Below, in pieces: positions 5,023-58,144 of a stretch of DNA of 64,000 nucleotides. Under the pieces are notes generated by a model that saw nothing but the letters and a program-made list of their open reading frames with translations, made no database searches and was not told the DNA's origin. The position numbers were made by a program, and so were the translations under genes. Source of the stretch: Schmidtea polychroa (taxonomy: Eukaryota); assembly GCA_044892525.1 (NCBI GenBank), contig CM097885.1, positions 157,108,001 to 157,172,000 of the forward strand. The letters run 5' to 3'. Each line of letters begins with the position of its first letter. Within the stretch, counting starts at the first letter, position 1.

Positions 5023-6172
5023 CACCCGTTTCCACATGTTAAAAGTCTTTATAATACATGTTGGTGTGTTCATCTATCGATGACTCACCATTTATGAGAA
5101 TGTTTATTTCATTTTTTCATTCTCAATTCAATTTTATTTATGGTTTTAGAAGTAAGTTTTTTAAATTTAAGTATATTTTAAGGCTTGAATTTTGATTTCA
5201 TATAATTATGAGATCATTATTCAAGCTCTTAAATATTACTTGTAATCAGCATTTATAATATATTTATAATATATTGATAATATATTGATAATTAAATTTC
5301 AGGTGCTTTTTTAGGTATTTTATGATATGTTATGAATTTGGAATTATTTCAATAAAATGTAAGTTATATATATTTTTAACTAAAAAGAAATAAAATAATC
5401 ACCAAAAACATTTATTTTTTTAAGAAATAATGGTTCCAATCGATTTTTTGGAGATTCCCAGTAATCTTCCAAAATCTTTATAATTTTCTCCATTTTCATA
5501 TGGATTGATGAGACGGATTTTGTCATTTTCTGAAATTCTTTGAAAATATTATTTTTTTTTTAGTTATTAAAATTTACGATTTTCGAATTTTTTTCTTCAA
5601 TTCCAAAAATGTCGATGGAACTTGTTGAATATCTTCACACAAAGGCGTTTGACTAGAAATATCTGATATGCTGTAAAATATTTTAATTATTTGTAATTAA
5701 ATAAAAAAATTCTTACATTGTCAGATCTTCACCTTCGCAAAATGGAAATGTCTCCAAAGAAATATCTGAAAATCTAAAGAAATATTAACTTCAAAAATAT
5801 TTTATAAATAGATCTTTCGATGTTTTGTCGTCCATTTCTCAAAAACTCAAAGTTGAGTTGTCAGATTCAAAATCCAAATTTTTTTCAGCCATGAATTTTA
5901 ATAATTTTAAATTAATGATATGTTAACAGTATGTTAATGACTCTCTACTTTCGGAACAAAAAAAGCTATATTAAATTTGCGTGTATTTTATATTATGTGT
6001 CCTGTGTTTGTATGTAAAATTATTTTTCTGTCACTTTCTCAATTCCTATAATAAAACTTTCTACATTCGGAACATTAAATTTTTGCACACAGGTAAGTTT
6101 GTGTGTTGCTATAATATAATTTTATCGATTTTTTTTTAGATTATAGAAACTCTTATATTGTGGAAACGGGTG
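5023..6172 (-). mobile_element. 1.15-kb non-autonomous Tc1/mariner-type TIR element, copy 1
   Basis: Perfect 14-bp TIRs CACCCGTTTCCACA / TGTGGAAACGGGTG, flanked by TA (5021-22, 6173-74). Body nearly identical to 56139-57260. Confidence 0.9.
5420..5892 (-). pseudogene. Inactivated copy of the 4-exon HTH gene
   Basis: Same exon structure as 56516-56991, but exon 1 has CGA>TGA and the intron-1 donor is GT>GA. Same terminal TCT-TAA stop. Confidence 0.8.
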
Positions 6173-19645: not shown

Positions 19646-21353
19646 CTGTAAAATCCCGAGTATAAGTTGCAGCGCGTATTAGCTGCAGATGACATTTTTA
19701 TAAAAATGTATTTTTTAGTCCTATAAACCGCAGCACATAGTAGCTGCACCATTTGCGTTGAAAACACATGATTTTTAAATCAGCAACCTATCATTAAAAA
19801 ACAAATTTCACCGTGACAATAACCATTTTGTTTTAATCGTTTACATTGTTTACATTGTTTACATTGTTTATTGCACTGTTTTGAATCCTTGATTAAAATG
19901 GATAACGATTCTGAACAAAAACAAAAGAAACAACGAAGATCTTTTAGTTCAGCAAAGAAAAAAAGAAGTTATTGAATAAAGCTCGTCTGTTCGGAAACAT
20001 ACGGGGGTTGCAAGACGATATGATATTAATGAAACTGTTATTCGACGATGGATCGCCCAAGAGTCTGTTATCAAAGCAATGAATCCAAATCGAAGATCTT
20101 TGCGTGGTGGTAACGCTATATATCCGGAATTGGAAACGAAATTACACGAATGGATCCTAATTCAACGTGAACGAGAACTTCAAGTGTCGGTTGTTCGAAT
20201 TCGTTTACAGGCACAAGTAATTGCCAAAGAGATGAAAATTGAAGGATTTGTCGCGAGCTCTCAATGGACTGATAATTTCATGAAACGCAAGAATATTTGT
20301 GTTCGACGGCCTACCACGAAGCAACAATTACCGAAAGATTGGGAATTTCAGATGGCCAAGTTTAGAAGCACCATCGCAGATTTAAAGAAGGATTTGCCCG
20401 ATAATCAAATTGTTAATTTTGATGAAGTGTCCATTCAATGTGACATGCCTTTAGGGTACACAATTGAGACTAAAGGTGCCAAAGAGGTCCGAATTAAAAC
20501 TACAGGACATGAGAAAAAACGATTTACCGTCAATCTATGTGTTCTCAAGGATGGTACTAAACTTCCGCCATTTGTTATTTTAGGCACAAAGAAACATCCA
20601 AAGACTTGCATTCCTGAATCAAAGCTTGTTATTGCAGCTAATGGATCTGGGTGGATGAATCATGAAACTCTTGAGATATGGCTCAAGAAAGTATGGAAAA
20701 GTCGAATTACATTTCCTCCAAAGACACCATGGAACCAGGATCCAAAAGTACCATCATTGCTTTTATTGAAATATGCATCGCTCACATCTTGACAGTACTA
20801 CACTTGATAAAATTAAGAAGGAATCCAAAGTAGCTTTCATATCTGCCGGATTTACATCAAAGGTGCAGCCATTAGATCTTACTGTTAACCGTTCGTTCAA
20901 GTCAAAATTGCGCAAGAAGTGGGAGGATTGGATCATTAAAGAATATGAAAACATCAAACATACTAAGTCCGGAAATATGAAAGCAGCTTACTGGAATACT
21001 ATTTTCGAATGGATTGTTTCTTCTTGGGAAGATTTTAACCTTTCCACCATTTTGAATGGTTTTTATGTTGCATTCGGTGAAGACGACGATGTTCTTGAAA
21101 TTGAAGAAAATGAAATCAATGTGAACGAGTCTGATCCAAACATTGTAGAATTACTAGAAAATTTCACTTTTATTGACAATGAAAAGTGTGATGGTTTTGA
21201 GGAGTGTGATGTTGAAAATTGAAATAAATAATCTTATCTTCGATTTGAATTGTTTTTTAGTTGTATAAGCTGCACATCATATTAGCTGCAATTCAGAATT
21301 GTTGCCTTAATGTACGTATTAGCTTATGTTAGCTTATACTCGGGATTTTACAG
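19646..21353 (+). mobile_element. pogo/Tigger-family DNA transposon, full length, frameshifted transposase (19898-21222)
   Basis: TIRs CTGTAAAATCCCGAGTATAAG / CTTATACTCGGGATTTTACAG with TA both sides. CENP-B-type HTHs (VARRYDINETVIRRW; YPELETKLHEWI) and DDE_1 motifs NFDE and VQPLDLTVNRSFK. Frameshifts near 19970-20005 and about 20770. Confidence 0.93.
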
Positions 21354-38800: not shown

Positions 38801-41800
38801 GTTAATCATAATAAAAAACAATTTCATAAAAAATGGTTTAAAAAGTTTTTACAAAAAAATCTTACTAAACGAATTTTCCAGTAATTAAACTCATTCTAAA
38901 TTCTTTAATTCTTTTCACCATTGAGTTTTCTCTCTTCATTTATTTTCAATAAAATATCTCTGAAATCTGAATCTATTTCCATTTTAACTATTTAACTGTT
39001 TCTGGTGAATATACTGGTTATGAAAAATATATTGTTTGTTTAATGACGAGTGCATACAATGACAACAACATGTATACTCGAAACATTGAGAACTTATGTA
39101 TAAAATAAAAATGAAGGAAAAGAGACAGTTTTGGATAAACAGTACTCTCATTCTCTTATATTTATGGAATTTAATATTGCTCATTGGTTGTTGAGGGTCA
39201 CGTATTCAGGTAACTTATACTGGTGACGGCTGGCATATAAACATTGTATTTAATAGATCTTTCATTGTTTAATTCTGTATTCTGTAGCTAATAAATAATA
39301 AATTACACTATTTGGTTTTATAAAAATTAATAAAACTGAAGAAAAGGATTTACATCGATTGTTTAAATAATAAGTATGGATATTACAGGGTTTTTACCCG
39401 TATTTTGACAATCTAATCTCTTTTATTGTCAATATAACAATTTAAATTGACAATATAAAGTGTTTTATTGACAATATTAAATTCAATTTTAAAAATTTAA
39501 ATATATTTTTTGACAAATTTGTAAAAATGAATCAAAAAAATGAATTCGAGGAGAATTCTTTAAATAACACAAGTGTCGAAAATAATGAAAGCGAACAAAT
39601 CCCACATCCGACCACCGATGTAGAAGTTCCAAATAAGGTTCCAATACAAAGGCGAAGGAATCAAACTACATCGAATGCTGATAGTGAAAGATTATTCGCT
39701 GCGTATGCAATACAAACATTCATTACTGATATAAGCCGCGTTCTCGTCGTAAAAGGAACAACAATATATGGCATCCTGAAAATATATATTGCCAATGGAA
39801 TAATTGAAGCCAGCAAGAGAGGTGGTGAACAACGTAAGAAGTTTAACGATACACGAAAGTGCAAGTAAAGGAATTGGTTGATGCGAATTGCGCCCAATCG
39901 TTAAGCGCTCTTGTAGCAAAAATATTTAATGAATATGGTGTGCGGGTTTCCAAAACTTATGTTCACAATTTATTAACTTCCTTTAACTAGTCGTTTAAAA
40001 GACTTCACCAAAATTCCTGAAAGATGAAATTCTACTGATGTAATTTCCGCAAGAAGCAACTACGCACTTAATTTTAGTTTTGTTTTAAGTTTATATTTTG
40101 AGGAAGTACTTATATTTATTGATGAGATGGAATTTAATGTTTCAATGCGAACATCACGCGTAGGCAGCCATATACTAAAAACGTACCGAACATTCGATCG
40201 CTTAATATATCGATAATTTGCACAATGAATAAACGTGGTTTAATTTTCTATAAGTATCATAATCGCGCAATTAATAAGGAGTTATTTAATGAATATATTA
40301 AGGAGTTTAAGTAGATTTAAATTGATAAGGAAATTTTTTGAGCATTATATATTATGGATAATGTGAAGTCCAGAAGTTATCAACACTATTATTGAGGAGT
40401 CAACAGAGCTAAGGAATCTATCACCGTACTCGCCTCTTCTCAACCTTATTGAGAATATTTTTAGCAAGTTGAAGGAGATTATAAAAATGGCCAATCCACA
40501 GAATGAAACAGAGTAATTGGATGCTATTGCTAATGGAAGTACTCTGGTGACTGCAAACGATTGTGCTGGATATTTAAGAAATATGTGGATTTATATACCA
40601 AGATGTATTAATAGAGAAGTTATAGTTGATTAAATAGGTTGTTATATTTTTGGTCAAAAATTGTATTTATTCTGTCAATAATATATTTTACATTGTCAAA
40701 GTATGCTTATATTGTCAATTAAAATAATTATATTGTCAATAAAAGATTTTATATTGTCAAATTAGGGATTAAATCCCTGTAAATGAGCTATTTTAAATAA
40801 GTCAAATGTAATAATCAGAATATCAGTGTCGTCTAAACAACAAAATATTGGTTGAAGTTCTTGCTGAAATCATGTCAAGATATCGAACGATACGATGGGC
40901 GAGGATCTAAGAAGGCTGACATCGAAGAGTGGCAACTAATAAATTTCCAGCGATTGACTAGTATATTTGATGGCGAAACACTGAGAAAATGTCAAAGATA
41001 CCATAACGACCGATGCAAAAGTCAAAAATAGTTTTAAATACTTTCACCATTTCCAAATCAATGACTGACAAAATCAATCATTTGTCAATTTTCGAATAAG
41101 AAAAATATTAATAATTCACAACACCTGAGATTCATTTAGGAAGAGAATTAGTTGAAGTACTAAAATCAAGGCGAAAAGGACATTACGCAAAACCTCGTCG
41201 CAAACAAAGCGCGAGATGTGAAATTAAAAGAACTTTTACTCACAAAGCTGGAAACAAAAATTGAAGAAACAAGAATGGTAGGGAAAATTTATGAAACTAG
41301 TGGAAATGCATGCTGTAAAGCTAAATATGTTAAAGCTATCTGCCAACGCATATATGCGAAAGTAACTGAAGGTGGATAAATGAATGTGCAGCATAAATTA
41401 CAAGATACAAGACGTACAACAGGGGTTCTCAATTAATATAATAGCGCGGAACATCATTTACATGATTTTTTACGCGGAACACTGACAAAAAAATACTGGC
41501 ACACAATGAGTGAACAATCACAAATTACTATAAATCTGTCGTAAACGTAAACAATGCCTTCTTATAAGCAAAGAAAATACCACGCGCAACAATAACAAGC
41601 AATAAAAACACTTTTATATTTGTATGTTTATATATCTGTGTAACGGCTTTCTTATTGAATCATCTTATAAAAAATTAATTGAGGTTTTTGATGATATGTA
41701 TCTTAAATGCAAATTTAAAAATAAAATATCATTTTTTCGCGGAACACGGGTTGAAAACCACTGACGTACAACATCACCAAGAAAACGATAAGAAGAACCA

Positions 41801-51027: not shown

Positions 51028-54000
51028 TAGGGTTGTTAAACGAAAATCGGAAATCCGATTTTCGATTTTGAAAACGATTATCGGTTTCTTTATTTCACAA
51101 AACGATAATCGGTTTTGTTTGACTTTTACATATTATACAGATAAATTGAATGCCGGGAATTTAATTTTGTTCATTGTTTACTACTGTATCCATTCAATTT
51201 TACCGACAGAAAGGGGCAGTTTTTTTCAACTCGTCAAAACTCCTTACAACGTGTTTGTACATGAGTCAATCTTTTCAATTATCCCATTCCTGTAACAACG
51301 GCAAGAGGTTGCTCTAGTATTCCAACATATCTCACCGACTGACCAGTTATTTGTCAGTTGATGTCCGTAATCGGCAACCGCTGATTTGTTTTATACAGCC
51401 CCTGACAGGTACTGTGCCCATTAAATCTTTTAATCGGGACCAGCTGAGGCCAAGGTTGTGGTTGTGTGTTTTAGTATTTGCATTTTGCCGGTTTTGTTTG
51501 GCAACCTGATATTTGTTGCCGAAATCGGCCACCAAAGATTTGATTACTGCAGTCCATAACAGAAGCTTAGCTATTAACCCCCTTGACAGGGACTAGATGT
51601 GGCCGAGGTCGGCGATTTTGTGTTTAGTCCGTGAAGGTCTATTTTGCAATCTGATATCTTGCATCTGCGAACCGGTTAAAAGTTTATTCTGGTTTTAACT
51701 TAAAACCAGAATAAACTGAATTGCATACCGCATCATCTTCATGAAAGCCAGATGTAAAGAGATCGAAAGACATGTGCCATTCCTCGAATCATAATGTTTG
51801 GTTGTTTACCCATTGAAATATGGAAGAGAGTTGGACACTAGGACAAACTTCAAGTTTGGGTGACGACCATTCTCAAATTTATTCAGTTAATTGATCTTTT
51901 GACAATGTCTAAGAGGCTGCTCAGGTCGAAGTAAATTGATTTTCGGGATTTTAATTTATGACAAGATTTTGGAAAGTCCAATCCATGGTTCAAATCTACT
52001 ATAAACATATAAACTGTTATATAATTTCCATTCATTCAGTTAGTTGCTCTTGTAGTAGCTGTTATTAATCCATATAATTGAAAATTGCGGTTTAGTTTGA
52101 ATATTACGTAATATTCAATAAACATTTTTTATATTATCTAAATCAATACAAAATCAGTTTAAATTTATGGGTTTCCGTATAAATAAGTCTGACGTCTGGG
52201 ACAATTTTGATAAAATTTCGGCGACGATGGCACAATGTAAGCTCTGTGCACAGCAAATAAGTAGGAGTGGAGGTACTACGACTGGTTTGCATGCACATTT
52301 GCGTAGCAAACATGGTGGATTAACAACATCTTCAAATACTCAAACACGATTGACTGCATTGATTACAACACAAAGAAATTGTCCGAGTAGTAAACAGGAA
52401 AAAATTACGGCTGCTGTTGCGAGATTGATTTCCGAAAATATGTTGGCAATTTCGCTCGTGGAATCGAAATCCTTCCGTGAATTGATGGCGATAGTGGAGC
52501 CAGGATATCGTCCTCCGTGTCGTCAGACGATGACAGCACGACTAACAGCAATGAAAAATAATTTAGTGGTCAAAATGTCGAAATATATCCATGAAAATGT
52601 CAAGGACATTGCGATCACTACCGACATCTGGACTAGTGTCACCAATGAAGCTTATCTCAGTTTTACTGCAAGCTACATTGATACAGACTGGAATATGATG
52701 ACGCCTGTTCTTGGAACAATTCTGATGACTCAACGCCACACACAAGCCGTCATTGCTGACCATCTATGTAGTATAGCTGATGAATGGTCAATAAAAGAAA
52801 AAATTGTTGCATGTGTCCATGATGGTGCATCCAACATCAATCATGCAGGCAATCTCAATGGATGGTTTGACGTTCACTGTGCGGCGCATAAATTGCAACT
52901 TTGCATCAATAATGCAATGGGCTCCCATGTTGTCACGGATCATCAAATTTCCAAATGTATATCAGCTGCAGCACGAATAGTCGGACATTTCTCACATAGC
53001 CCAATGGCAACGGGGGAGCTCCTGAAAAGACAGTTGTCCATGGACAAGGATAAAACGCCACTAAAACTTATTCAGCACTGTAAGACTCGTTGGAACAGCG
53101 TCTATGACATGTTTGAACGACTAGTAAAACTGAGATGGCCAGTAGTTGCAGTATTGAGCGACAAAAACGTGGTGAAATTGAACGATGCCAAAACGTTGGG
53201 CATGAAGGACGATTATTGGCAACTGATGACTGAATTGCTCCCTGTTTTAAAAGCGTTGCAGATCGTGACGTCCGTCATGTCAGCCGAAAGCCAGCCATCA
53301 GCCTCTTGTGTTTTTCCCATGTTATGGGGACTCGTGAAAAATCATTTAACCATTAAAGAAGAAGATTCTGACATTATGGGTGAATTTAAGAGAGATCTTG
53401 CTAAGAATATTTCACGTCGTTTTGGATTAGAAAATAATGAAACAGCAAAAAACGAATGCGTTGTTGCATCAATTCTCGATCCGATGTATAAGCATCTTCC
53501 TGGATTTCCGGACGATTTCAAAAAGCTGGCGTATGAAAATGTCCGTCATCTCATCAGACAGCTGCCAGATTGCCCCGAACAGCCGAAGACGAGTCGGGAT
53601 GAAGATAACATGATCCCACCAACTAAAAGATCACGACCAAATCATGATGCAGTTATGTTTCTCCTTGGTGATAGTGCAGCACAACAGGCGCCAGAGGAAT
53701 CCGACTTTGAATATTACGTCAAATCATTATGGTCGACAAACTCAAGTGAAACAGCCCTGGAGTGGTGGAAACATAATATGAAACTTTTCCCCAAAACAGC
53801 TATTCTTGCCCGGAAGTTCTTATGCATTCCTGCAACCTTAGTGCAATCGGAACGATTATTTTCGGCCACTGGACGTCTGATAACCAAGCTTCGTAACCGG
53901 CTCCTTCCAGATCATGCAGAATCTTTGGTCTTTTTGAATATGAACCAGGACTTGTCTGATATTTAAAAATAAAATCGAATTTAGTACTTACTTTTAAATG

Positions 54001-54367: not shown

Positions 54368-56138
54368 AATTGAATATAAAGCACGTTAATAAAAGAAATT
54401 TTAAAAGTATCACGTGCCAATGGTAGGATGTTAGGAATTTTCGGGAAAGTTTCTTTGCAGATAAAATTTAAAGATAAGAAAATAATCGACGAATTTGTTT
54501 ATCCAAAGAAATTTTGGGGTTGTCTAGATTTATATAATGTAAAGTTTAAATGCACAAAAATCTGATTGAGAAATAATAAAAAGCTCAATGAAACAAAATT
54601 GAAAAAATAATAATTGAAGTGGGAAATATAGTGCCTGAAACACGTCCATTCAATTTTATTTAATTGTTTAAAATTAAATTCCAAATCCGTTTTTAAAAAT
54701 AACAAGTATTTAAATTTTGTTTTAATATTAATTAACACCACGTTTTTTGTATATCGAATGTATAAATGCATCAACATCAATTTTTCTGTTCTTCATATAT
54801 TTCTGTGCTATTAGCGTTCAAAGTTCACCTAATCGAAATATCAGATCACATTTTTCCTCTTTTTTTCTTTTTTCCTTTTTTTAGTTTATTTTTTATTCAA
54901 CTTTTTTTTTGATTTTTATTTTATTTTATTTATTTATTCTTTGATTTTTTTGTTTTTATCATCTTTATTTTTTGTTATAATTATTTTTATTTATTTATTT
55001 AATTTAATTATTATTTTTTTACTCTTTACTTTTTCTTTATTTTTTCTTTTTTTGTATCTTTTTTTACTCTTTTTTAATTTTTTTAAATTTTATTATTATT
55101 CTTTTTTTTCGTTTTATCACAATTAAAAATAACAAAAAAATAAAAAGAGATTCTAACCGGAATCCGTAGAATTCATTTTTCTGAACCTTCCTAATATACA
55201 GAAACAACCTGAAAATGAATTTTATGTAATGGGGAAATTTTAGATAATTCAATTTGTTTTTTTTATACCAAATTTCTTTCGTTTCGAAATGAAATTCAAT
55301 TATTTGTAAACTCTGTCCACAATTATTATTTTGACTAATATAAAAATGTATTTTAGTTATTTTTAAAAAGTAAAAAGTCCGTATTTTATTTTTATATAAT
55401 TAACCGATTTAAAATATTTTGTCAAACACCAGAATAATAATTCACGATTTTTCCGTCACTCCAGCGCCTCTTTTAGAACCTCAGGGCCTATGGCAGTACC
55501 CAAACTAAGGGCTCTATTTATTTCATTTTTTTAAATAGTATCGTAATTTATTGAACACAAACTTCTCGACCTGTTTTCAATGTAAATTCATCAATAATAT
55601 GATCAAAATTAAGATTTTTAGCTAAATCGCTATTTATATGAAGCATTCCAACGCTGTTGAGACGACTGAAATATGCGGCGCGTTAAATAAGTTAAAGGAA
55701 ACCAACGGGAACGACTTAAATTCTATTACAAAAAATCTTCCGAAATATTTAATTCTCTGCCGAAAACACGTCACATTGTTTATAACAGTAATAACCCACC
55801 AAAGTTAAAGATAAAGAGAGCCAAGACTCAAGGTAGAAAGGCTTTTGAAAAGATTGTAGCAAAAGCCCAAATATCCAGAAGAAATGTAGCAACTAACAAA
55901 ACATTATTTAAAATTAACTTAATAATATCAGAGAAATTATGAACATGTAATCGGAAAACTGGTAGATCCTAACCCGAGATGATACAATAGATCAGTGGTT
56001 CTCAATTAATATAAAAGCGCGGAACACCATTCACATGATTTTTTTACGCGGAACACTGACAAAAAAATACTTGCTCACATTGAGTGACCAATCACAAATT
56101 ACTATAAATCTGTCGTAAACGTAAACAATGCCTTCTTA

Positions 56139-57260
56139 CACCTAATTCCACATGTTAAAAGTCTCTATAATACATGTTGGTGTGTTCATCAATCGATGAC
56201 TCACCATTTATGAGAGAGTTTATTTCATTTTTTGATTTTCAATTCAATTTTATTTATGATTTTAGAAGTAAGTTTTTTAAATTTAAGTATATTTTAAGGC
56301 TTGAATTTTGATTTTATATAATTATGAGATCATAATTCAAGCTCTTAAATATTACTTGTAATCAGTATTTATAATATATTGATAATTAAATTTCAGGTGC
56401 ATTTTTAGGTATTTTATGATATGTTATGAATTTGGAATTATTTCAATAAAATGTAAGTTATATATATATTTTTAACTAAAAAGAAATAAAATAATCACCA
56501 AACACATTTATTTTTTTAAGAAATAATGGTTCCAATCGATTTTTTGGAGATTCCCAGTAATCTTCCAAAATCTTTATAATTTTCTCCATTTTCAAAAGCA
56601 TTGATGAGACGGATTTTGTCATTTTCTGAAATTCTTTGAAAATATTATTTTTTAAAAATAAGTTATTAAAATTTACGATTTTCGAATTTTTTTCTTCAAT
56701 TCCAAAGATGTCGATGGAACTTGTTGAATATCTTCACACAAAGGCGTTTGACAAGAAATATCTGATATGCTGTAAAATATTTTTATTATTTGTAATTAAA
56801 TAAAAAAATTCTTACATTGTCAGATCTTCACCTTCGCAAAATGGAAATGTCTCCAAAGAAATATCTGAAAATCTAAAGAAATATTAACTTCAAAAATATT
56901 TTATAAATAGATCTTACGATGTTTTGTCGTCCATTTCTCGAAAACTCAAAGTTGAGTTGTCAGATTCAAAATCCAAATTTTTTTCAGCCATGAATTTTAA
57001 TAATTTTAAATTAATGATATGTTAACAGACTCTCTACTTTCGGAATAAAAAAAGCTATATTAAAATTGCGTGTATTTTATATTATGTGTGCTGTGTTTGT
57101 ATGTAAAATTATTTTTCTGTCACTTTCTCAATTCCTATAATAAAACTTTTAACATTCGGAACATTAAATTTTTGCACACAGGTAAGTTTGTGTGTTGCTA
57201 TAATATAATTTTATCGATTTTTTTTAGATTATAGAAACTTTTATATTTTGGATTTAGGTG
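56139..57260 (-). mobile_element. 1.12-kb non-autonomous Tc1/mariner-type TIR element, copy 2
   Basis: Ends CACCTAATTCCACA / TTTGGATTTAGGTG. TA duplication shown by the empty site CCTTCT-TA-TAAGC in the 41420 MITE copy. Confidence 0.93.
56516..56991 (-). CDS. 4-exon, 113-aa acidic + HTH protein (transposase-like DNA-binding domain only)
   Basis: Exons 56991-56918, 56872-56816, 56769-56677, 56633-56516. Three phase-2 GT-AG introns of 45, 46 and 43 nt. 342 nt in frame. Ends ISENDKIRLINAFENGENYKDFGRLLGISKKSIGTIIS*. Confidence 0.75.
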
Positions 57261-58144
57261 TATAAGCAAAGAAAATACCACGCGCAACAATAACAAGCAA
57301 TAAAAACACTTTTATATTTGTATGTTTATATATCTGTGTAACGGCTTTCTTATTGAATCATCTTATAAAAAAATTAATTGAGGTTTTTGATGATATGTAT
57401 CTTAAAAGCAAATTTAAAGATAAAATGTCATTTTTTCGTGGAACACGGGTTGAGAATCATTGTGATAGATGAACAAATGAAGTTCGATCTCTTGAATGCA
57501 ATTTAGTTGGCCATATAAAAGATTATCAGTTTATTACCTCGTTCTTTAACGAAGATTCATCCAAAATCTTAAAGAGTTCAGCGAATGATTTCCTACTACT
57601 TGTCTGCATTACACAAATAATATGTTATGAGCCTGATGATATATTTTTGTAAAAAAAAAGAGAGTCAAAGATAAATCTTTAACTAATCAACGGAGAGACA
57701 ATGAAAAATATAGCGATATATGAAATATAAGTCATCATTAATCGACAAGCATGAGGCTTTCATTGAAAATTTTGCAGCAAAACTAAACCAATGTTCTCTA
57801 AATTTTTCAGAGAGAAATACGGAGAGAATCCATAAATAAACCAATCATCTATTGTAAAGAATTAGTACATGGTTTATGTTTGAGACGTGTGGAAATAAAT
57901 GTGGGGGCTCTGTTTACAGAATGTTAAATAAACTTCTCCAGGATTATCTTGATGAAACAGAAGGCAACCTAGATATGCTAGTGGAATTTAAATGCAAAGT
58001 CATGCAAAAATTTTGTTAAAAAAGCATTGTTGGGTCAAAACTGTAAGCCACATTTTTATGATAATATTTAAATTTAATTATTCAATAGTTCTTTTCTTCC
58101 TCTGTAAGATCATTTATTTTGATTATTTTTATGTAGTAGTAGTA

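Follow-up and report, generated by a model that had tools for sequence, protein, structure and literature searches.

A 1.1-kb element in the genome of Schmidtea polychroa carries a four-exon frame of 113 codons that is best explained as the relic 5' part of a transposase gene, left behind in an ordinary internal-deletion derivative of a Tc1-like transposon and decaying neutrally; we give this reading a probability of about 0.8. The element lies on the forward-strand stretch of 64,000 nucleotides analysed here (the window), and its features are collected in Table 1.

On this reading, the full-length parent would have contained three mini-exons encoding an acidic N-terminal extension, followed by a large exon with a paired-type helix-turn-helix (HTH) and a DDE domain. 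A deletion starting midway through HTH helix 3 and reaching to the last ~16 codons would then have joined the two ends out of frame, producing an immediate TCT-TAA stop. Both terminal inverted repeats (TIRs) were kept, and the derivative was, we infer, mobilised in trans by the transposase of a full-length relative. Insertion would have taken place at TA, here into another miniature inverted-repeat element (MITE), and the copies would have decayed neutrally afterwards; spliced transcripts would be possible, and nothing indicates that their peptide is needed or selected.

The element and its insertion site

The TIRs of the window element have 35-nt arms that are 83% complementary and similar across copies, and TA flanks both sides in nearly all copies (31 compared). 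The MITE into which the element is inserted has a second, uninterrupted copy in the window, and there a single TA (41563-41564) stands where the copy at 56k holds the element. TIRs, TA on both sides and a single-TA empty site together establish the 1122-bp element as a real TA-duplicating insertion, which bears out the preliminary description of a TA-flanked TIR element of 1.1 kb. The window's two members of this MITE family, with CAGTGGTTCTCAA at their ends, comprise one insertion target and one empty site. Near-full-length copies of the element elsewhere in the genome (a 781-Mb assembly with four very large sequences) show 95-97% identity, and the surroundings are AT-rich (window ~27% G+C).

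With a TA duplication and TIRs, and with a partial first HTH as all that it retains of a paired-type HTH and DDE/D transposase, the window element is a non-autonomous member of the Tc1/mariner superfamily. MITEs are usually shorter than ~800 bp and lack coding capacity; the window element, at 1122 bp and with a 113-codon remnant frame, lies outside that definition.

Table 1. Features of the element, its predicted gene and its host MITE (window positions; minus strand is gene sense for the element)
Feature	Positions	Strand	Basis or remark
Non-autonomous Tc1-like element, internal-deletion derivative, 1122 bp	56139..57260	(-)	TIR pair, genomic copies, alignment to 1.99-kb relative
5' TIR in gene sense, CACCTAAATCC...	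57228..57260	(-)	TA directly after at 57261-57262
3' TIR, CACCTAATTCC... (inward reading)	56139..56171	(-)	TA directly before at 56137-56138
Exon 1, 74 nt: ATG + 24 codons + 2 nt, acidic N-terminus	56918..56991	(-)	Matches L039:1143-1216
Intron 1, 45 nt, GT..AG, phase 2	56873..56917	(-)	Retained in 12/12 full-length relatives
Exon 2, 57 nt (FSDIS..FCE..)	56816..56872	(-)	Direct reading; duplication test; X2 contig end
Intron 2, 46 nt, GT..AG, phase 2	56770..56815	(-)	Direct reading; full-length relatives
Exon 3, 93 nt (ISDIS..., KKKIRK at end)	56677..56769	(-)	Direct reading; X1, X2 contigs
Intron 3, 43 nt, GT..AG via upstream AG, phase 2	56634..56676	(-)	Relatives' frame; X1 contig end
Exon 4: truncated first (PAI-type) HTH of transposase, then TCT-TAA	56516..56633	(-)	Pfam match, translation
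Deletion joint creating stop, ATTATTTC / TTAAAAAAA	56516..56530	(-)	Comparison with L006d, L039
Last ~16 transposase codons, LKKINVFGDYFISF*, one frame off HTH	56476..56523	(-)	ORF 56476-56622 against L039 C-terminus ...CIKKINVYGDYFIYKYKNI*
Second window copy of element, gene broken, variant TIR CACCCGTTTCC	5023..6172	(-)	Alignment to 56k copy
Host MITE (~340 bp, CAGTGGTTCTCAA... TIR), left half	55994..56138	(+)	Alignment to uninterrupted copy
Host MITE, right half	57261..57466	(+)	Alignment to uninterrupted copy
Host MITE, uninterrupted copy = empty site	41423..41763	(+)	Alignment; repeat families D10, D13, D14

Two TIR variants occur in the window family, CACCTAAATCC/CACCTAATTCC and CACCCGTTTCC, exemplified by the two window copies and by loci L016, L020, L024 and L026, and some copies are mixed, with a different variant at either end. 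Members of the window family and of its siblings are often nested or abutting (L006:1392-3738, L012:500-1510, L029:520-1525, L005:2620-3600 and L009:560-1520), part of which may reflect bias in the picking of candidates; in one example of nesting, a window-type copy splits an older sibling. The copies at L002 (contig C69) and L003 (contig C2) are identical, including ~25 nt of flank on each side, and may represent duplicated or uncollapsed assembly.

The window also holds traces of other transposons. An uninterrupted 599-codon open reading frame (ORF) at 52167-53966 (+), with a local G+C content of 40%, looks by translation like a hAT/ZBED-type transposase, and two adjacent ORFs of 237 and 149 aa at 20079-21222 (+) resemble a pogo/Tigger-type DDE transposase that a frameshift has broken in two.

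The gene model and its full-length relatives

The minus-strand model comprises four exons, 113 codons plus TAA (114 with the stop), and its introns all run from GT to AG in phase 2. Direct reading reproduces the frame of 113 aa over three phase-2 introns of 43-46 nt that had been described before, and the structure proves to be inherited from a full-length gene. The translation of exon 4 likewise agrees with the preliminary description, as does its HTH: in a Pfam search run exon by exon rather than on the joined spliced protein, exon 4 matched HTH_SB (E 4.8e-4, profile positions 8-43 of 53) and HTH_28 (E 7.3e-4), both under the gathering cut-offs. The likeness drawn there to an IS630/Tc1 transposase ORF at 39527 is not upheld, as that ORF gives no Pfam HTH match and no tblastn match to the window family. 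For the same ORF (39527-39868 (+), 113 aa), no DDE ORF was seen downstream.

Exons 2 and 3, suspected earlier of being duplicates, do represent a duplicated intron-plus-exon unit: their score of 14 compares with a maximum of 13 in 1000 shuffles, and so exceeds all 1000. The duplication is also present in the full-length gene, and is therefore old and not peculiar to the window element.

At introns 1 and 3, a TTTCAG that looks like a stronger acceptor follows 8 nt downstream of the one in the model (at 56865 for intron 1, ending at 56626 for intron 3), and its use would lead to an early stop. A model built from the window sequence alone therefore hinges on the AG chosen, and the choice of the upstream AG is justified because the full-length relatives need it: for intron 3, the upstream acceptor is the sole one that keeps their 338-codon last exon in frame.

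These relatives were reached through a diverged copy (L006:2631-3738) that adjoins a window-family member and keeps 82 codons of exon 4; a genome search with that 82-codon piece returned many matches lying within open frames that run for 332-341 codons. Among these is L039:863-2851, a TIR element of ~1.99 kb whose TIRs start with CACCTAA. From its ATG at 1143, the gene has exons of 74, 57 and 93 nt and introns of 45, 45 and 43 nt, with phases as in the window element, followed by a last exon of 1015 nt (338 codons) that matches HTH_SB (9.2e-8) and DDE_3 (6.7e-19). Upstream of the HTH this large exon offers no in-frame ATG, and its open frame starts only 4 codons upstream of the acceptor; accordingly, a 412-codon transposase requires exactly the splice pattern first read from the window. 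All six splice sites are kept in 12 of the 12 full-length copies examined, and every feature is kept in 2 of them.

Comparison of the two lineages (window family against L039) gives a pN/pS of 0.39 for exon 1, 0.65 for exon 2 and 0.23 for the HTH. Values below 1 argue that these exons were coding while they belonged to a working transposase. Purifying selection is visible between lineages only, as expected from the time when the exons still belonged to a functional gene.

Several further observations concern the full-length family itself. L039, and also L036 and L048 among others, are full-length Tc1-like elements of ~1.99 kb, some of which are open throughout, with 99.7% protein identity to L039. 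Four exons separated by three introns of 43-45 nt make up their transposase gene, which encodes an acidic N-terminal extension of ~75 residues and contains the motifs IDECGF ... HDNASIH ... LNPIE, in which the apparent spacing from the second D to the E (putative catalytic residues) is 28 residues, compared with 34 in Tc1. A literature search for DD27E to DD30E yielded nothing relevant, and a PDB sequence search with the large exon of a relative gave no catalytic-domain match, the only hit being a weak one to the Sleeping Beauty PAI subdomain (6URS, E 0.45).

The window element aligns with the 5' ~760 nt and the 3' ~390 nt of L039 at ~78-80% identity: its ends are co-linear with the full-length element, and the interior is gone at a discrete joint, L039 being a sister lineage and not the exact parent. 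The joint falls inside HTH helix 3 (…ACC ATT ATT TC / T TAA AAA AAT AAA TG…). The transposase tail that follows it is readable only one frame off, which identifies TCT-TAA as a by-product of an out-of-frame internal deletion. The preliminary description had noted that both window copies share this stop and had placed the truncation before their insertion; this is confirmed, and the joint is in fact family-wide. It had also reported that no DDE sequence remains, which is correct, although the final ~16 codons of the transposase are still present, out of frame.

As a consequence of where the frame stops, helix 3 of the predicted 113-codon product has no C-terminal half, and the second HTH is missing altogether. 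The chain ends at about residue 46 of the 57 in the Sleeping Beauty PAI subdomain, as judged from a relative aligned weakly (E 0.45) to PDB 6URS.

No full-length element with the window family's own HTH emerged among the genomic matches displayed. In searches with the family's helix-3 and HTH words, every displayed match entered the deletion joint or point mutants of it (16 of 16 for one pattern; 100 listed of 222 for the HTH word); the pattern with 16 matches accepted any letter except the joint's C at the next position, so that a longer continuation was covered. The full-length family that was found differs from the window family at TIR positions 8-12, with CCGCG as opposed to AATCC, ATTCC or CGTTT. 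The exact parent of the window family may be extinct, or may be another of the full-length lineages that the genome search returned, which show 72-83% identity and open frames of 329-337 codons.

Sister derivatives break at other points, as the members of a swarm of deletion derivatives would be expected to do. In L006d the fusion follows the start of the second HTH and apparently took place at an AAATG microhomology; the L012d type joins helix 1 to the C-terminal region and has lost exon 2 together with part of exon 3 and most of exon 4; and the L028d type shares 86% identity with the window family. A 29-mer spanning the window-family joint occurs exactly 173 times in the genome and a 24-mer of the window-family HTH 222 times, the latter implying at least ~220 copies; allowing for 3-4% divergence between copies, we estimate the window family at a few hundred (the 4357 candidates of the first genome search include related families). 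The HTH-less joint of the L012d type, at 634 occurrences (<=1 mismatch), is more abundant than the window joint, so amplification is independent of the HTH frame.

Decay, splicing and alternative readings

Selection on the frame was assessed in 31 near-full-length copies, a biased sample in that they were the ones closest to the window copy, with changes scored against the majority state. The whole gene model is intact in 17 of the 31 (45% broken), and the majority state is still an open frame of 113 codons. The gene had been called intact on first description, and this holds for the copy at 56k; it fails for the second window copy, in which a CGA>TGA change introduces a nonsense codon into exon 1, donor 1 is lost (GT>GA) and further amino-acid changes occur. 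Across the sample, 15 synonymous, 81 non-synonymous and 9 nonsense changes were observed, as against a neutral expectation from the non-coding spectrum of 39.8, 129.3 and 10.7, respectively; the ratio of non-synonymous to synonymous changes (N/S) thus exceeds the neutral expectation. Variation at codon positions 1, 2 and 3 is 1.42%, 1.15% and 0.53%, so that the third position varies least, and private substitutions per site per copy number 0.0081 in exons, 0.0085 in 5' non-coding sequence, 0.0068 in 3' non-coding sequence and 0.0045 in introns. By N/S, nonsense count and density of private substitutions among the 31 copies, the frame is not kept by selection: the window-family copies are young and are decaying neutrally. 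Among the outcomes that the preliminary description had named as speaking against its proposal are broken frames in most copies and a dN/dS near 1. The copies come close to the first, at 45% broken, and bear out the second, with N/S above the neutral expectation and 9 nonsense changes where 10.7 were expected.

Indels are ~5 times rarer in exons than in the flanking non-coding parts, and introns are equally indel-poor; as introns share the scarcity, its source is repeat-poor sequence rather than the reading frame. When neutral decay was simulated at the rate of the flanking non-coding parts, 27% of copies were predicted to be intact, compared with 53% observed. Selection was considered as the cause of this excess and rejected: the excess is due to indel-prone repeats and shared variants in the flanks, the introns being as indel-poor as the exons.

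A third outcome named at the outset as adverse, an absence of spliced reads, is not what was found, contig ends on exon borders providing indirect evidence of splicing. The material consists of assembled contigs from two runs, X1 and X2, whose RNA status is a guess (probably RNA). Among 32 listed contig ends, five coincide to the nucleotide with predicted exon borders (56769, 56677 twice, 56633 and 56816), where ~0.17 would be expected by chance. In X1, a 93-nt contig is exactly exon 3 and another ends at 56633; in X2, one contig match stops exactly at 56816, its 30 further letters matching nothing here, and another ends at 56677. None of the borders hit is variable among the 31 genomic copies, and intron 1 appears in the contigs in unspliced form only. 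De Bruijn-graph contigs break at sequence branch points, so that ends on exon borders are an indirect sign of coexisting spliced and unspliced forms. This suggests splicing of introns 2 and 3, the latter at its upstream AG; transcripts of the derivative may be spliced, with their inherited splice signals intact.

Several findings count against the reading as a neutrally decaying relic. The majority frame is open and is retained by about half of the copies sampled; exons are indel-poor relative to the flanks; the contig ends suggest splicing, so a peptide could be made; the 31-copy sample is biased; and the search revealed no full-length partner with the window family's own TIR variant and HTH.

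Some of these findings would suit a repressor comparable to the KP derivative of the Drosophila P element. Inhibition of a transposon family by truncated transposase is exemplified by KP and by dominant-negative mariner mutants, and in Sleeping Beauty DNA is bound by the first 57 residues. On this alternative, a few hundred frame-bearing copies would yield a spliced 113-aa peptide (acidic, with KKKIRK and a partial PAI HTH) that binds TIRs or transposase and damps transposition. An open frame both in the majority state and in 17 of the 31 copies, the HTH_SB-like match and the contig-end signs of splicing at introns 2 and 3 are in keeping with this, but we consider it unlikely, because the stop arose by accident at an out-of-frame joint, helix 3 is without its C-terminal half and the second HTH is missing, purifying selection is absent among copies, an HTH-less sister derivative is commoner, and the searches turned up no cognate full-length partner to repress. 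It is similarly doubtful that the frame-bearing copies, about half of those sampled, together supply a pool of TIR- or transposase-binding peptide that throttles transposition; were this true, an out-of-frame deletion would have given rise to an accidental KP-like self-limiting system in a flatworm-type genome. The preliminary description had proposed a mobile, spliced dominant-negative protein or small transcription factor. Its mobile Tc1/mariner-type element and its DNA-binding-only piece of transposase stand; a selected role is not supported, given neutral decay, an accidental stop and a cut helix 3.

Less probable again is that the 5' 760 bp are kept for cis-acting sequences needed in mobilisation, such as an inner transposase-binding repeat, with the open frame as a passenger. 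The 5' non-coding part and the introns are conserved between lineages as much as the exons or more, and a TIR-like motif ~100 nt inside the 5' end (window 57130-57165; L039:950-985) varies between lineages as the outer TIR does (TTCCGAA against GCCGCGAAA). This inner repeat lies ~190 nt upstream of the ATG, however, so that the exons are not required, and the exon-depleted L012d-type derivative is still abundant. A motif scan for an inner TIR-like repeat, at <=7 mismatches, recovered the two outer TIRs only. As an observation in its own right, the inner motif could mean an IR-DR arrangement with lineage-specific transposase binding.

Finally, that the frame is an artefact of free splice-site choice in AT-rich DNA, with no gene structure behind it, might be argued from the better-looking TTTCAG acceptors at introns 1 and 3 and from Pfam matches under the gathering scores, but sequence comparison with the full-length relatives has already largely refuted this and we hold it to be highly improbable, as the identical model is required for their ATG and open 412-codon transposase at ~78% DNA identity, between-lineage pN/pS is below 1 and contig ends fall on exon borders.

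Significance and comparison with known systems

The reading of the 113-codon frame as a transposase relic bears mainly on annotation: the frame should be masked as transposon, and not entered as a host gene or small transcription factor. The window family and its siblings amount to hundreds to thousands of such pseudo-genes in the 781-Mb genome. More generally, function should not be deduced from the presence of an intact spliced frame in a young repeat: here such a frame persists in about half of the copies sampled, and their substitutions show no selection on the protein. The wider interest is modest and attaches to the parent gene, with its three introns, duplicated mini-exon and unusually short apparent D-to-E spacing; the sister set is a natural setting in which to compare deletion derivatives that carry an HTH remnant with those that do not.

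KP has a complete DNA-binding and dimerisation region and demonstrated repressor activity. The window element resembles it as a deletion derivative that keeps the N-terminal DNA-binding part of a transposase and has lost the catalytic part. It differs in that its HTH is cut in helix 3, so that the 113-codon frame does not encode a complete DNA-binding domain of the kind found in a KP-type repressor, and in showing no sign of selection.

Like Sleeping Beauty and other Tc1-like transposases, the full-length relative combines a PAI-type HTH (HTH_SB 9.2e-8) with DDE_3, and insertion is at TA; unlike them, its gene has three short 5' introns, an N-terminal extension of ~75 residues and a duplicated exon.

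The closest parallel is with internal-deletion derivatives of Tc1/mariner elements. Microhomology-mediated deletion as the seed of MITE families has been described for a mosquito Tc1/mariner element (PMC3814204). The window family has the features of internal-deletion derivatives: TA duplication, TIRs and both ends in common with a full-length element, a discrete joint, several sister joints and hundreds of copies. In contrast to a classical MITE, however, the window element is 1.1 kb long and retains the first 113 codons of its transposase together with three spliceosomal introns.
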